A stretch of DNA of 64,000 bases from Auanema rhodensis. Its lineage: Eukaryota; Animalia; Nematoda. The notes under the pieces were generated by a model. That model searched no databases, had not been told where the DNA came from, and was given only the letters and a program-made list of their open reading frames with translations. Made by a program: the position numbers and the translations under genes. Position 1 is the first letter of the stretch. Each line of letters opens with the position of its first letter. This document shows positions 49,601 through 58,600 of the stretch, one piece after another. Location: positions 8,742,001 through 8,806,000 of the forward strand of contig OZ059894.1 in the NCBI GenBank assembly GCA_964057225.1. The letters run 5' to 3'.

Positions 49601-52600
49601 TATATAAAGTTTATGAATTGCTTATATTCATATCATATAATAGCTGGATAAGACTCGTGAAAAGAACTTTTTTTCGTTGATTCCTCTTTTTTTTAATTTA
49701 ATTAGTGTTCTTAATCTTGTTTGATAATTCATGATGCTTCTGACTATTTTAGATATCATTCTAATCTCTTCTTTCTTTATTTCTTCATCATTATTCTCTT
49801 TTTATCTTCGTCTTCCTCTTTCCTTCGATGCTAGATATCCTTAAAGCTTATCTGCCACTTGTGCATGCTGATGCCTTAATTGGCTTGTGCAGCCGGTTTT
49901 TTAGCATTGAAGCAACTTTAGTTTATCATTTTTATATATTTATATACATATATATCATCTAAACTTTAATTCTGAACATTTCATAACAGCGTTGTTCCTC
50001 TGAGATATGTGTGCTTTGCACGATTTCTTCTCTGTATCGTCTATTTTCTTTAATTGTTTTCCCGAAAATCGTTCAAAGTATTATATCAAATAGAAGATAC
50101 ATGTTAAGCACTGGCATGTTTCTTTGATTTCTTGCTTCATAAAAAAATTCTTTTTGTTCCTATCATCAAATTGAACAAACATCTAGCTGAAATTCGTGTT
50201 CTTCAGGTGGCCAGTGATATGGGGGTAGAGATGCCGCCCCCAGCGACTGTCCTGAATAACAAACAGGTATCATGTTCATAAAAATCAATTTATATTGTGG
50301 AAAACAATTGATTTTCTTATTCTTAATTCAAAAATTAAAATTTTTTCAAGTTGAACCCAATAATTTCAGGAGATATCAACGCGAGCTTCAGAGATTCCTG
50401 CTGCCGACACATCACATGTAAGCCCAAAGTCGTCTTTTTCTCTTATCCTCTCCTTCCATTCAAATATTATAGCTTTTTGGATTTGTTTCAATATTTTTGT
50501 TGAGAATTATGGATGTTTTTCTTATTTTCCCTTTCAGATAATATCGTTGAAAGACCAATCAGTTATGTATACTACGGGCGCTGTAGCCCGACAAGAAGCT
50601 TTGATAGGTCGTCTTCAAAAAGAACTAACAGATGTTCAAAGTTGTGTAAGTTATATAATAATTTATTTAAATAATAATAATAAATAATCATAATTAAGAA
50701 TCATTTTTTGAACAGTCAGTTGACAGCTCTAAGATCATCTGATGGCGGACAATTCAAAAAAGAACTAAATGAGACCAAGGTTAGTTTATTTATATATATA
50801 TAATTCTATTTAAATAATTATTAAAAAAAAAAACTTTTTGCTTATTTTCTTTTATGTTCCATATATTATAATTATCTTTTTCTTACTGCTTCAAATCTAA
50901 TAGTTGACAATATTTGCAATTACAGCCTGAAACTTGTAAACATGAGCTTTTAACTAAGCTAACTTATCAATTTTAATATAAAAATATTTTATTTTTTTAT
51001 ATTTATAAAATAAAATTATACCTGTTCTAATACACGATATATTTTACTCCATGTTTGGACATGTACTTCTGTCATTTCGTCCTCCCCTAATACTTTTGAT
51101 AGCATGCCAATTAATCCTGAAAAATTCGTTTCCGTTTAAAATATATTTTTTACTCAAATTTCGTTTCAAGAATATTTTTAAAATTAAGTTTTTAGAATTT
51201 TTATATTTTTTTAAATATTAAAAAAAATAATTTGAATACGACGCATACCTTGCATAAACGATTTTCGTACTAACGGAGGACACACATCTAAGACTAAGCA
51301 AGCAGTAACATAATCCTTCATCTGACTTGTTAATTGACTGAATCCTGTATCAGGTGCATGTGATTTAATTGTTATATCTAGTGCCTTAATTATATTATTA
51401 TAATCTAATTTAATTTTTAATTTCTATCTTCATACAGTCACAGTTAATTCAGCAAAATCATTGAAGTTTTCATGTGTTCTAGAAATTTCGGGAAGCGGCA
51501 TTTTGATGTTATGCTTGTGAAGTAGATCAGCATATGTCTGAATTAAAATTTGAACGTGTGTCTGATGAAAAGAGAGAGAAAGAGGGAGAGAGTAAGGTCT
51601 AATGATAAAAGAGAAAAAACTGTTATTTTCTTTTGATATTGACTTGCTTTCTGTATTTTTTGTAGCAAAAACCCAAAAAAATAGTCATCAAGCTGGACAA
51701 AGCTAATAAGTTTGCGTCTGTCTATCATGAATTACTTTCTCTTATTATTTATTTATATTAATAATAATAATAATAATATATATTGTGATATTGAATTTAC
51801 CCTGAGTGCAGTATCACACAACAAACGTCCAGCTTCAAGCATACCATATTCCAATACATTCATCCATTTAACTCTATAATAATTATTCTAATTATTCTAA
51901 TTATTATTAAATATTTTTTTATTGTGAAATAGTTATAATGATTGTTATCATCATTATTTCATGTCTCATATCTGTTGGCTAATATAATTCCATGATAACC
52001 AACATTGCTTTCATGACTGGGCCCTATTCATACCTGATATAATCGATTTCTTGAGGCGTCATGCATTGCTTCATATATGAATTTCTTTGTATTGTTATTC
52101 CTTCACTTATATAAGTTTTGATCTCACTCAACAGCTAAATGAATTATCTATTAGTTCTTTCATTTCTTGAAATCTTCTCAATCACTTACTGATTTCCATG
52201 ATAATTCCGTTTGTTCGTCTAATGCATGAACTCCATGTAACATCTTTTTCATGGATTCTATGATTCCTTCTTCGAAAATCTGTAAAAATCATATTTATAA
52301 CTGGAATATGAACTGAATAGAAGTGCAGATTACTTCCAAATGTGGTTCACACGCATCATAGAAGAAGTGATGAGCTCCAATCTCGTTCAACAGTTTCCTC
52401 ATTCCAGCTGTATCGTCTTTGTTTTCCATAACCATTGTCAAACCAGCTTGAATTGAAGCACAATGATGTCTAAAAATCTATTTTATGTTTACAAATATTT
52501 TAATTTTAATTATTATTTTAACCTAAAATAGAAATCATCATAGAGCACTGATTTCCATTCATCATTAGAGTCTTCAATCTTTTTACCAAAATGCCAAATT

Positions 52601-55600
52601 GGACGAATATGCTTGTAATGGCTCAACATATGAATGAAAGCATTTTGGACTATTATTCCCTCAAAAGAAACACTTTTTTTTTCTTTTTCTCGTTCAACAT
52701 ATTAGTCACCTGCTTGTTAGTTTTATGTAATTGAATCCAGTGTGCTCGAGCTAGATCACTTTCCCTTAACTGGCTTTCATCAAACGGTTCCTCTTCCTGA
52801 ATTTACGTTTTTTCACAATGAAATTCTTACAAATCTTTTAAGTTTGCGTTTCATTCAATTATATTTGAAAACAAAAAAATGATTGATAAATCTAATGACT
52901 AACTAAAATCGTCAAACTATTCATATGAAAAGAATAAATATGTTATTGAAGGACACGTTAAAAATTAAATTTTTCTTCTTTTCATACATTAGCTTTGAGA
53001 TTTTTCTTTTTTTTTTTAAATTAAAATCAAAGAAGCAAACCTGTAAATCATATATCTCATAGGAATCATCATTATGTTCAATATCTTCATCTAGTGAATC
53101 ACTCAATGTCTTTTGATCTATAAGTTTGTAATTTAAGTTTTAAACTGTTCCAACTTTCTTTATATTAAGAAATTTTGCCAGAAAAATAAATTTCTTCAAG
53201 TATTATTGCTAAGTAACTTACATCTATTCACTGAATTAGAGCTTTTGCTATTCTGCATTTGAGCTGCGTGGCAAACTTTTATAATAGTTTCGTGTACAAG
53301 CTTAATATCTTTTTTCAATTTTTTTTTATAAAAAAGATGAACTTTGAAACTACCTCGTGAAGACGATAATCCTGGTACATACACTAAGTTCCGAATATGT
53401 TGATTGTTCAAACTCAAACTGATTTTATAGCATAATATATAATGACAAATAATTAGTTTTAGTGAGATTCTAGCTAATCGTTTTCTGAAATAATTTTAAT
53501 TATTTTGTTTAATCTTGTCAGAATTATGTATAATGATAAGTTTAAAAAACAATTTTCCTTTTCAAAAAATGATTTTTAAATTTAAAAATTAGGTGAGATT
53601 CAAATCCGAAAAGTTAAGTAGTTATCTCAACATTTTGATTGAAAGAGGGAGAAAAACAAGAGAAGAGAGGGTTCGTTACTCTGCGAATATACAGATTCAT
53701 TTGAAAATAGTATGGTAAAGTAATAGAAATATGAAAGAAGAGAAGAAGAGATTGAACATCTAATAGAATATTGAAGAGAATTGTTCGTTTTCTTATTCGA
53801 ACGATGTCAGACAAGTTGAGATAATATTGACTTTCTGTAGGAGAATACTAACCAACAAACAATAAGCACACGACAATACATCTACGACTCTTTATATGGA
53901 GATATCACAAAAGTACAATGATATTTAGATATTATTTATATGAATATAGTTAAGAATATATGTATATAACTATATAATTATTGATTAAGATTAGTTATTA
54001 CTTTACCTATATGAGATTTTTTCTCTTTTTTTTTTCATCTTTATTCACGAATTGCCACTCATTCATCGCCACCTTTTTTTACTCCGAACTTCAAATAAAT
54101 CGCTGAATTGTCTAGCACTAGGATGACGAACTTTTAGATAATCGACAGTCAGCTTTTCACAAAAAGTAGCTCAATTCCACATTCCATTGTTCCGGTTTTT
54201 TTTTCAATATATGTTACCATTTTTAATATAGTTATCTAACTATTATATATGTTTATTTTGAGTTATATCTCTACGATTTTTCAAATTTTAAACATATTTT
54301 CTCATTTTCTTCAAAAGTTGTGTTCTTTTCTCACATATACATCTCTAGTTATCATCCATTTTCGGCTCGATTACCAATAGTTTTCAGAAAAACTTGAAAG
54401 AGTGCAAACGTGAATAGAGAAAATGAGGTTGCATAAGCAAATAAACGATGAACTTATGAATGAGCTGTAGTTAGTCTGTCCGAATCTAGCAGCACATTTG
54501 GTAGAACGGTGAATTGATGTGACAACATCTACATACGTCTACATCCGCTGCACATCCTTGAGCTGTGTGCCGCCGCATTTGATTGTCTTAACATATCCAT
54601 CAGTGACGGTTCCATCTTTTGCTTCATCTTTTCATCGTCTTCTTATGTCTTTTATTTGTCCTTCGGTCCTTCTGCTGTTTACTTGTGCCCTCCGAACCAG
54701 CCGGCCTCACCTCTGTGCTGGCTTGGTTCCACCCGGCGAGCATCGATTCGGACGATAGAGCCGGACCCTGTCACGCTGATCAGCGTGCATTTTCTGTGTG
54801 TCCGGTGAATATTGTCCAAATCTTAAAATAACATTCATTGATTTTTTTCTTCAATATATCAATTAATGACAGCTGATTGTCGTATATTCGCTATAAGCGC
54901 ACACATACGTTTGTATAATTATGGTCGCGAACTGTCAAAATGTTTGAAATTCAAACTCACTTCATATTCAGCATTAAAGCTTTGATCTGGCTTATTCTCA
55001 ATGATTATAATCATGTTTCTTTACATTTTTTTTCTAAAAATAGTATTAGAATAAGCTATAGATTCTAGCTTTTCACTGTACAGTTAGTGAAACATGTATA
55101 TGTATATTTGTCACAAATTTGGTTGTGAACTGATAACATAAACTGAATTTCCTCTCTCACCCGAACCAGTTGGGTTTCAAATTTCTAAACACCTCTATCC
55201 ATCTGTGTGCATCACTTCTTCTACATCCAACATCATCATCTCACCTGTCAATCCAACGTTACAATAAATTTACATAAAACATGAATCTTCAATTGAATAT
55301 GTTTGAATATTATGAAAAATATTTCTAGAAATATCTTTTCTATTCTCGTTTTCATTCCAAAATCATTATTTGTATTTCCTTTTTGTTTTTTTTTTTAATT
55401 TTATTGTTTTAATTTCTGATATTCTTATCAATATGAGATCGAAACATGATGTTGGCCATCTATAATCAATCGGCTTCCTATTGCTTATCATCTCTAGGCT
55501 TTACAGTTGTATCTCAGAACATTCAATGTAATACATAACCTTCATGCTTATTCACAACTCTAAATACAACAGAATTTCTCTTTTTTTTCTCTTTTTTTCT

Positions 55601-58600
55601 CTTTTTTTTGTTGTTTTTCTTTTAAAAAATTTACTTACTCACATCTAAATGCGCTTAGCATTCCAGCATTTCTCTTTCTTTCTCTAGTTTTAGACTCTCT
55701 TTTTCTATTTTCTATCTTTCATTGTTTTTTTCTTTCGCATACTTTTCTAATCTCTCCCGTTCTCTTTCAATATTTTCCATACAAAGTTCAAACTAAACTT
55801 CTATATTGGGTACTAGTTTGCAAATTGTTGAAATCAATGTTTCGCTCCTTTTTCTCAAACAATTATAAGAACATCTATTTTAAACTAAACGATTCAATAT
55901 TGTACAATTTCACATTACTTCCATAGAAATACGTCATTTTTTACATTTTCTGCTCAAATTATTTGTCAAAAATTGTCAAAAATGAATGAAATTTGATAGT
56001 TTAATGTTGATCCTATGCTAAATGGGTTGTGATGAAAACGATAGAAACAACCATCTGACTAACTATATATATAAATATATATATATAACTCATATAATGA
56101 TGAAATCTACTTTTTTATAGTTTGTGTTCGGTTTTTGAAACTAAAAATTCATCAAAATCTTTCTATCTTATTCAATAACAATCATTCTGCTTAATTCACT
56201 TTATCTTCATTTCATATTCAAAATATTCTCTTTTGTCAATCATTCACTCTCATACATTTCTCAGTATAATAGTAAAAGGGGGAATGAACTCCCAACGATT
56301 CGACCTCATTCTACCACTTCAATCTCACTACCTCTATATTCCAACCTAGGCTGTCTCCTACCTTCTCTACCCTTTTGTTCCAAATCGCCCTCGTTCAATA
56401 TTGATTTGCACGATGACGATTATTGATTTCAAGGAAAATATATTCATCCAACATGATATTCAGATGTATCTTTCGATGAGAACAATCTGATTTGAGTGTT
56501 CTTTCTGCTATTCAATTTTCATTTCGAATTCACTTTACCATGTTCGTTTCTTAAGATCTATCTTTCTCTCTTCTGATTTCTTTCTCTCTCTCTCATTTCT
56601 TTCCGTCACCCCAGTCAAGTCACAATGTTATTTCAATTTTAAAGAAGTCAAGTACAATTTGTGAAGTATTTCTTTTTCCATTTATTTATCTAAAACTATG
56701 TTGTTTTCAATAATAACTACTAATTAACTATTTCAAATATGTTTATTCTTTGCCTTTTTCGGGAAAAATGCTAGGTTACCATAGAAACAGGAAAAGTATA
56801 ACATACTAAAGGCCATATGGCCCTTTTCCTTAAGGCAATAATTTCAACTATTTTTGGTTTCTCAAAATTTTTTTTTTTTCAAAAACTATCAGATGTTATA
56901 TCTTTTCTCATCATTTAAAAAAAAAAGAAAGAAGATATATGAATCATCTATACAAATATATTAATAAATAGAATATATATTTAGTATATAAACTATTTGA
57001 AGCAATTGATTGTTTGAAAAATAAAGTTACTACTTCATAATCTGCTTATTTCTTTTATTTTTTATTATTTTATGAATAATAAAAACAATTAAAATCAGTC
57101 AAAACTGCAATTTATTGAAGTACAAAAGCCAATTTTCTTGGTTTTGCAATTGTAATTTCACATGCAATTTGCTGGATTTTATGAGCTATGTCTTGACATT
57201 GAAAATCAAATCCAAAAAGTCTTATTTGAAATTTTTTTATGTAATTTCTATGTAATAGCTATTTGTATAATTTATTTTTCTTTATTATATTTATATTGAT
57301 TCAAGTTTCATTTTTCTTCTAGAATCAAAAGCGATGTTCATGTAATTGATTTTACCAAATTTGGTTAAAAAATTAAAAAATGTCGTATGAGGTGGAGGCA
57401 TTGAAGGTAAAATTTGATATTTGGAACATAAAAATAAAATTAAAATAATGATATTATAATTAATATTAGATATATATTTATAATTTTAGAGAGAGTTAAA
57501 AGAACGGCAAAATGAATGTGATACGTTGCGAAAGAAAAATCAAAAGTTTGAACGAGATAGGTAAGCATTTTCATAGCATTTTATAGTTTATTTTATTATT
57601 TTTAAACCTTTTTTTCTTTTTTGTTCTGGTTTTCTAAATATATATCTTGATGATTCCCTGGCGAAAAGTTTTGGCTAAACTTAAAGAAACCTGTATGACC
57701 GTTAAGTTCTAATCCATAAAGCAAACAATGAGAGGAATGAGGATGATGATTACGAGGAAAGAGAGTACTAGTATGATGAAGATATCTTACGCCACAAGAA
57801 ATCTTTAGACTTATAATGAGCTAATGAGAGAGAAATATAATGAAAAGAAAAGAGAGAAAAGAGAAAAAGCAGAGCATGAAGCTTGAGGGTGATATGAGTA
57901 ACAGCTGAGCGGATTGACCTTGCTAATCCTGATTATAGAAGATATAGTTTAGAAAAACATACATTTTGATAGAAAAGTATTGTAATATAAGAGAATGAAG
58001 TAATAGATATTATGAAATAAGACATTGGAATTATGATGTAATATTAAAAAAATATATAATATACTATATATATATAGTTAGTTTATATAAGTTAAGCAAT
58101 TATTAATTTTACATAGTAGTAGTAGTAGTTGCAGTAATAGAAGTTGTTAGTCAGTTTTGGACATGTGTATAGTTACATGAATATGGAATATAACTAGCTT
58201 CTCAAAGATACTAGCACGATATTAAGAGAATACGAAGAAAACTTCAAAGAGAGTGAGAGAGAGAGAAAAGAAAAATATTGGCGCAGTGATGTTAGAGCAA
58301 AAATTTAAGTTTAAGAGAGAAAGAAAGAGAGACAGAGAGAGAAAGACAAAGTTTTTGAAAGCAGATCCATTAAAAAATCCATTTAATATTCTTGCCGGAC
58401 GTTATTATCGTCACGCTATCTATTTATCTTTAGAGGGAAATGAATAGAAAAGCTCTCCGCCGGATATAGAGTTATGTTGACTGGCTGATAACGTAGAATA
58501 TGAAGTGAAGAGAGTGAGGGAGGTGAATATGTAAGAAGATTTGGATGATAACACGAAAAGGTTAGGGGAAAAGGAAGCATCATAGACCTGAAATTGAAGT

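Follow-up and report, generated by a model that had tools for sequence, protein, structure and literature searches.

The Locus and Its Gene

The window, a stretch of 64,000 nucleotides of contig OZ059894.1 with a G+C content of 32%, holds on its minus strand a gene identified by sequence comparison as the orthologue of glb-5 in an Auanema-like rhabditid nematode. Exons assembled locally from the window give a coding region at 53258-50897 with 12 exons, encoding 366 amino acids (aa) and a stop codon. Every intron of this model is GT-AG, and 366 codons are read without a stop from the ATG at 53258 up to the TAG at 50897-50899. Ten in-frame exons cover 52796-50897, and two further short 5' exons (53258-53222 and 53117-53041) contribute a polar N-terminus. 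The product is a haem-type globin domain (domain 1, D1) followed by a region (domain 2, D2) predicted to form a second globin fold that lacks the histidines expected to hold haem. The parts of the gene are as follows.

53258-53222, 53117-53041, 52796-52710 and 52659-52523, minus strand: exons 1-4 of the glb-5 orthologue, GT-AG, open frame
52469-52334, 52279-52190, 52134-52034 and 51873-51801, minus strand: exons 5-8, GT-AG, open frame
51537-51436, 51384-51249, 51116-51022 and 50926-50897, minus strand: exons 9-12, GT-AG, open frame
52778-52087, minus strand: domain 1 (aa 45-204), haem-type globin with W58, F91, His115 (E7), His147 (F8) and W186
52086-50900, minus strand: domain 2 (aa 205-366), predicted second 3-on-3 globin fold without haem-ligand histidines
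52134-52034, minus strand: junction exon, running from the last part of the D1 H helix through an invariant linker motif, Q-R-x-x-Y-L, into the D2 A helix

An earlier note on this DNA had described ten exons of a two-domain globin and located the codons of a key His and a key Cys; exons and codons are exact (CAC at 52367-52369 and TGC at 51298-51300), and the five exons that it counted after the one ending the first domain recur in the 12-exon model. Its observation of two domains holds, but it did not recognise the well-studied gene in which they lie.

The closest relative is a protein of Auanema sp. JU1783 (P0035), which is 75% identical and collinear over residues 1-366 with two small gaps. 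CBR-GLB-5 of C. briggsae (P0039) is 50% identical over 317 residues (E 1e-124), and the best full-length matches named GLB-5 (from C. briggsae, Aphelenchus, and Pristionchus) range from 45% to 50% identity over ∼320 residues. "Protein GLB-5 a" of Aphelenchus is also among the matches of a word search seeded with P0003, and glb-5 of P. pacificus is a member of the P0036 cluster. When exon C, which encodes the E-F helices of D1, was searched against representatives, 30 matches were returned, many of them 340-420 aa long, and local BLAST aligned them with the whole model. Another match of that search is a 2093-aa protein (P0026) with at least 15 repeats, every one of which matches the globin E-F exon, a giant multi-domain globin. 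The 32 GLB-5-family proteins that were compared by tblastn with the 64-kb window, a set that contained no GLB-6 query, match only at 50800-53300. In C. elegans, glb-6 is a close neighbour of glb-5, 4 kb apart (PMC2228317).

The layout of a globin domain and a conserved region of ∼160 aa past its H helix is collinear in GLB-5 orthologues. The two domains occur together in clade V (Caenorhabditis, Auanema, strongylids, Pristionchus, and Mesorhabditis), clade IV (Bursaphelenchus, Aphelenchus, Ditylenchus, Heterodera, Panagrellus, Panagrolaimus, Halicephalobus, Acrobeloides, Steinernema, and Parastrongyloides) and clade III (Toxocara and Gnathostoma). Because D1 and D2 are thus present across nematode clades III-V, their fusion is, on this comparison of sequences, old. 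The splice junctions of the model are all backed, end to end, by collinearity with ∼25 independent full-length orthologues.

The relatives in cyst nematodes, P0022 of Heterodera trifolii and P0055 of H. schachtii, are longer (500-579 aa). In P0022, residue E7 of D1 is Phe, and a Cys-Pro dipeptide of D2 that is common elsewhere has been lost.

A Haem-Type Domain and a Predicted Second Globin Fold

Two histidines mark D1.

52463-52465, minus strand: codon CAT of His115, distal His E7 of D1, which aligns with His58 of haemoglobin alpha
52367-52369, minus strand: codon CAC of His147, proximal His F8 of D1

Among 32 sequences, His147, W58, and W186 are invariant and His115 is kept in 97%. Exon C alone matches Pfam Globin (E 0.079) and residues 58-94 of haemoglobin alpha, and Pfam Globin matches D1 of the orthologues at E values from 3e-8 to 4e-14 (for example, P0035 at 88-208, 3e-8). 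By its His F8, His E7, Trp A12, and Pfam match, D1 is classed as an ordinary haem-type globin domain.

D2 is predicted to be a complete globin fold from helix A to helix H. The AlphaFold2 model of D2 from the Auanema sp. JU1783 orthologue (P0035:219-380) has a mean predicted local distance difference test (pLDDT) of 92.2 and a predicted template modelling score (pTM) of 0.87; its helices A, B/C, E, F, G, and H follow one another as in globins. VIA-align superposes the model on neuroglobin 7ohd_B over 134 of 134 residues with a Z score of 15.3 and a root-mean-square deviation of 2.5 Å. Foldseek returns globins only, and 700 of its 1000 best chains reach a VIA Z score of at least 8. In a scan of 48,161 PDB representatives that is independent of Foldseek, all 50 of the best are chains of the globin superfamily, with animal 3/3 globins at Z 14.4 and the haem-less RsbR domain at Z 9.5. 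The expectation in the earlier note that the second repeat adopts a globin fold is borne out by this model. Its remark that a Trp is retained in the A and H helices of both domains also holds, with W225 (A helix) invariant and W348 (H helix) kept in 94% of the 32 sequences.

Sequence profiles point the same way. Searched against all PDB sequences, a D2 profile has globins as its seven best matches; the best is Gasterophilus haemoglobin (E 0.008), and the others include chironomid Hb V, Hell's Gate globin, and a Drosophila globin. A language-model search with D2 leads to nematode globin clusters, a result at the level of a lead. The alignments of D2 and D1 orthologues are matched by hhalign over 135 columns (E 5e-4, probability 32%), with Cys309 of D2 paired with His147 of D1. 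Standard annotation passes D2 over. None of 22 D2 sequences matches Pfam Globin (PF00042) at E values up to 1, full-length proteins show one Pfam Globin stretch each, on D1, and the D2 exons searched singly match nothing in Pfam, NCBIfam, or PDB sequences.

A model of D1 and D2 together (pLDDT 90.4; pTM 0.85) has a D1 H helix of 32 residues, a break of three residues, and then the A helix of D2, and it predicts with confidence how the domains are placed relative to each other. In the PDB it is matched best by engineered di-alpha haemoglobins, in which both domains are covered in another orientation (TM score 0.41-0.50).

An internal duplication of D1, as had been proposed earlier, and a fusion with another globin gene are both possible. 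D2 is 14% identical to D1 and, with an hhalign probability of 32%, is no closer to it than to insect haemoglobins or neuroglobin. Intron positions do not coincide either (∼E6.2 and G5.0 in D1; ∼E13.0 and G11.1 in D2), and the duplication is thus unproven. A word search seeded with D2 by itself turned up no stand-alone relatives of the domain, a weak negative given that the same search missed known C-terminal fragments.

Absence of Conserved Haem Ligands in Domain 2

The positions in D2 that bear on ligand binding are as follows.

51454-51456, minus strand: codon TTT of Phe274, E7 of D2 and seventh residue of the predicted E helix
51298-51300, minus strand: codon TGC of Cys309, F8 of D2 or one residue off, last residue of the predicted F helix
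51277-51282, minus strand: codons of Cys315-Pro316 (Cys315 at 51280-51282), the best-conserved Cys of D2, at the FG corner directly before the G helix
52063-52065, minus strand: codon of Cys212, a semi-conserved Cys of D2
51816-51818, minus strand: codon of Cys241, a semi-conserved Cys of D2 that maps to B9/B10

On the distal side, the reading of a Phe in place of the E7 His is upheld, as Phe274 occupies the seventh place in the predicted E helix and, when D2 is aligned with Drosophila globin 2bk9, falls opposite the distal His. Of 32 sequences, 21 have Phe in this column; the others have Leu, Val, Met, Tyr, Ile, or Ala. On the proximal side, position 309 is Cys in 21 of the 32 sequences, Phe in all six from Caenorhabditis (full-length C. 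elegans GLB-5 is not among these six), Tyr in two (Necator and Parastrongyloides), Ser in Toxocara, Arg in Gnathostoma, and Ala in Heterodera. In no column of D2 does the share of sequences with His exceed 52%. Nor is there a conserved Phe, as expected for CD1, at the start of the CD segment, which is the least conserved part of the domain (0.36).

Assignment of Cys309 to F8 is supported by the profile alignment of D1 with D2, by a spacing of seven residues to Pro316 at the start of the G helix, and by the buried/polar pattern Y-V-T-A-C-L over F4-F9. Myoglobin has the same seven-residue spacing from F8 to the G helix, His93 to Pro100. Counted back from the end of the F helix, Cys309 would instead be F9, and two sequence-only alignments to other globins put F8 elsewhere, at V306 and D313. 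The D.C.P motif shared by the domains, once taken to fix the register, is rejected as proof: the Cys in D1 is Tyr, Phe, or Trp in clade IV, and Pro317 in D2 is mostly Thr. We keep the register because of the other grounds, namely, profile alignment, G-helix spacing, and the F4-F9 pattern. The alternative F8, the Ala308 column, is polar and variable. Because column 309 varies and column 308 is polar and variable, D2 has no conserved ligand under either the F8 or the F9 register.

Four Cys residues of D2 are semi-conserved: Cys212, Cys241, Cys309, and Cys315 are kept in 81%, 68%, 66%, and 91% of sequences, respectively. Cys315 is found in 29 of 32 sequences and Pro316 in 31 of 32 (97%). The pair matches the Cys-Pro dipeptide of haem-regulatory motifs, a putative haem-binding feature, and is placed by the model at the FG corner, where it would cap the G helix. 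Cys241 (B9/B10), Cys309 (F8), and Cys315 (FG corner) fall on the walls of what was formerly the haem pocket.

Constraint Has a Different Distribution in the Two Domains

Mean identity to the window's protein is 52% in D1 and 42% in D2, and conservation is distributed differently along the two.

D1 conservation: high in A (0.71), E (0.72), EF (0.75), F (0.65), and FG (0.83); low in B (0.47) and D (0.43)
D2 conservation: high in the linker (0.65), G (0.63), H (0.66), and FG (0.59); low in E (0.47) and CD (0.36)

Ten residues of D2 are invariant (Arg205, Tyr208, Trp225, Gly294, Leu298, Arg320, Leu331, Arg353, Glu356, and Gln357). Judged from the alignment, this pattern fits a haem-independent domain that bears an interface, such as a partner or docking module.

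A Proposed Pseudo-Subunit Fused to a Haem Domain

C. elegans GLB-5 (C18C4.1) is an orthologue with collinear D1 and D2 and shares with the present protein the His-His pairs of D1 at E6/E7 and F7/F8. According to published work on that species, GLB-5 is hexacoordinate and acts in neurons AQR, PQR, and URX with GCY-35/36, sharpening responses near 21% oxygen (O2), and the glb-5 allele of strain N2 yields a truncated, apparently nonfunctional product (PMC7839455, PMC3106018, PMC6224195). Expression in O2-sensing neurons and the genetics of O2 responses come from C. elegans only (PMC7839455), and how regulation by GLB-5 works is stated to be unknown (PMC3106018). The N2 protein (P0050, 258 aa) matches CBR-GLB-5 up to residue 220, in the D1 H helix just past its Trp, and continues with 40 unrelated residues. 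D2 in its entirety, together with the greater part of the D1 H helix, is thus missing from the N2 product.

Hoogewijs 2007 listed C18C4.1 with a "post H helix" part of 162 aa (PMC2228317). Together with the restriction of Pfam matches to D1, this listing agrees with the earlier expectation that annotation would treat the tail as a plain extension. We found no description of D2 as a globin fold in the literature library searched, and the fold may already be visible in public structure predictions; while glb-5 is a well-known gene, its tail appears to be undescribed as a globin fold.

We consider it reasonably probable that GLB-5 combines a haem-bearing D1 with a fused, ligand-less pseudo-subunit, D2, that stabilises or tunes D1 or docks partners. 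The protein would then have three parts: a short, poorly conserved N-terminus; a haem-binding D1 with His E7 and His F8, which by comparison with C. elegans GLB-5 would be the hexacoordinate part; and D2, a complete globin fold without haem ligands, joined via an unbroken extension of the D1 H helix. As a built-in pseudo-subunit, D2 would be packed in a fixed way on D1 and most likely carries no haem. A conserved surface would be offered by the linker, FG corner, and helices G and H; through it, D2 would stabilise or tune D1 or would dock partners, for example, the soluble guanylate cyclases of oxygen-sensing neurons. The choice offered in the earlier note, of a second domain that is either Cys-thiolate ligated or haem free, is thereby narrowed: position 309 varies, and the haem-free state is the most likely one.

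Several points weigh against this reading. The fold of D2 was predicted from the orthologue P0035 (residues 219-380, 71% identical in D2) and not from the window's own protein, and the AlphaFold models are silent on whether the pocket is empty or filled. Splicing in this species has its sole support in collinearity with orthologous sequences. The F8 register and the interface between D1 and D2 are themselves deduced. The presence of Cys241, Cys309, and Cys315 at the pocket walls could mean that D2 has a ligand after all. The N2 truncation fits a need for D2 without isolating its role, as the H helix is lost too.

An alternative we regard as unlikely is that the pocket of D2 serves another ligand, such as haem bound transiently via Cys315-Pro316, a metal or nitric oxide (NO) on the pocket Cys, or a lipid, of the kind bound by non-haem globin sensors of bacteria. 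The strong retention of Cys315 and Pro316 and the position of three Cys at the pocket walls are what such a site would be built from, and non-haem globin folds with other ligands are known (PMC7475203). Cys is, however, common in the buried cores of cytosolic proteins, and the strongest conservation in D2 lies outside the pocket. Furthermore, the Cys-Pro dipeptide caps a helix in a folded domain here, whereas haem-regulatory motifs are mostly located in flexible segments.

An extended form of this alternative, which we think has a rather small chance of being right, would make GLB-5 a two-site sensor in which pocket thiolates of D2 reversibly bind haem, metal, or NO and gate the hexacoordinate D1. 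If true, a redox- or haem-responsive pseudo-globin would gate an O2-tuning haem domain, which would be notable since nematodes cannot make haem.

We judge it very unlikely that D2 is a second haem domain whose iron is ligated by the thiolate of Cys309, as in P450-type proteins. Cys309 does lie at or beside F8, and Cys is the majority residue there, but the site is unlikely because Cys309 is not conserved across the 32 sequences. Conservation in orthologues is thus at odds with the thiolate ligation that had been put forward. With Phe in six Caenorhabditis sequences and Tyr, Ser, Arg, or Ala in others, position 309 behaves as a buried hydrophobic site rather than a metal ligand. In addition, helices E and F and the CD segment are among the less conserved parts of D2, and the conserved CD1 Phe is missing.

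It is scarcely credible that D1 and D2 belong to separate transcripts or are joined by an artefact of the gene model. The junctions of this gene rest on comparison with orthologues and not on reads, but one exon, 52134-52034, carries the last part of D1 together with the first part of the D2 A helix, which makes it hard to read the two domains as separate genes, and the collinear arrangement of D1 and D2 recurs in ∼25 proteins spread over three nematode clades. In four sequencing runs from one study, 0.39 of the sampled words of the stretch are present, near the 0.37 expected for ten spliced exons and above the 0.21 expected for the D1 exons alone; this comparison is suggestive only, as DNA ∼3% diverged would give a similar share.

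Equally far-fetched is a D2 that is merely a helical extension, globin-like by convergence: the raw pairwise similarity between D1 and D2 is marginal (local score of 40, equalled by 47 of 2000 shuffles), the hhalign probability is low, and by the tool's own note helical models can reach a VIA Z score near 14 by chance, but the whole set of helices from A to H is matched, in the same order, over 134-144 residues, the structural searches lead to the globin superfamily, sequence profiles independently give globins as the seven best PDB matches, and the language-model search leads to nematode globin clusters.

Comparison with Other Globins

The domains of Ascaris perienteric haemoglobin and of other tandem-domain invertebrate haemoglobins each keep His F8 and bind haem. 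These proteins likewise have two globin folds per chain (for background, see PMC2228317). Unlike theirs, the second domain here is without a conserved ligand and invisible to Pfam. Globin folds that are kept while the E7 and F8 ligands are lost, as in D2, are found in the RsbR N-domain and in sporulation-inhibitor sensor domains of Bacillus anthracis (PMC7475203), and the degenerate globin domain of arthropod androglobin also keeps the fold without the ligands (PMC7457136). By structure, animal 3/3 globins (Z 14.4) resemble D2 more than RsbR does (Z 9.5), and D2 is fused directly to a haem-type globin domain. Vertebrate neuroglobin, the best structural match of D2 (7ohd_B; Z 15.3), is 22-25% identical to it in structural alignments. 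Neuroglobin is a single domain with bis-His hexacoordination, whereas D2 lacks both His. In comparison with the Caenorhabditis orthologues of GLB-5, the protein of the window has Cys rather than Phe at position 309.

The gene is known for alleles that are among the best-studied natural or laboratory-derived ones altering behaviour. A second globin fold would make of ∼160 residues (∼45% of the protein), so far an unexplained "extension", a defined domain whose surfaces can be tested, for which Arg320, Lys350, Arg353, Glu356, Gln357, the linker residues Arg205 and Tyr208, and Cys315-Pro316 are candidates. It would help to explain the null behaviour of the N2 allele, from which D2 is missing altogether along with most of the D1 H helix. 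It would also provide a case, among animals, of a pseudo-globin joined to a working globin, in which constraint has moved away from the pocket and onto helices G and H and which standard domain annotation has missed.

Surroundings of the Gene

Upstream of glb-5, a G+C-rich patch lies at ∼54500-54800 in otherwise AT-rich intergenic DNA, and Rfam has no match in 53300-56500 at E values up to 0.1. Within the gene, the intron between 51249 and 51116, which includes 51195-51233, is AT-rich. Just 3' of the glb-5 stop codon, two open pieces with coiled-coil-like sequence lie on the opposite strand.

50547-50687, plus strand: open piece, coiled-coil-like
50708-50803, plus strand: open piece, coiled-coil-like

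Neither piece has a match in Pfam, and both probably belong to a convergent neighbour gene.

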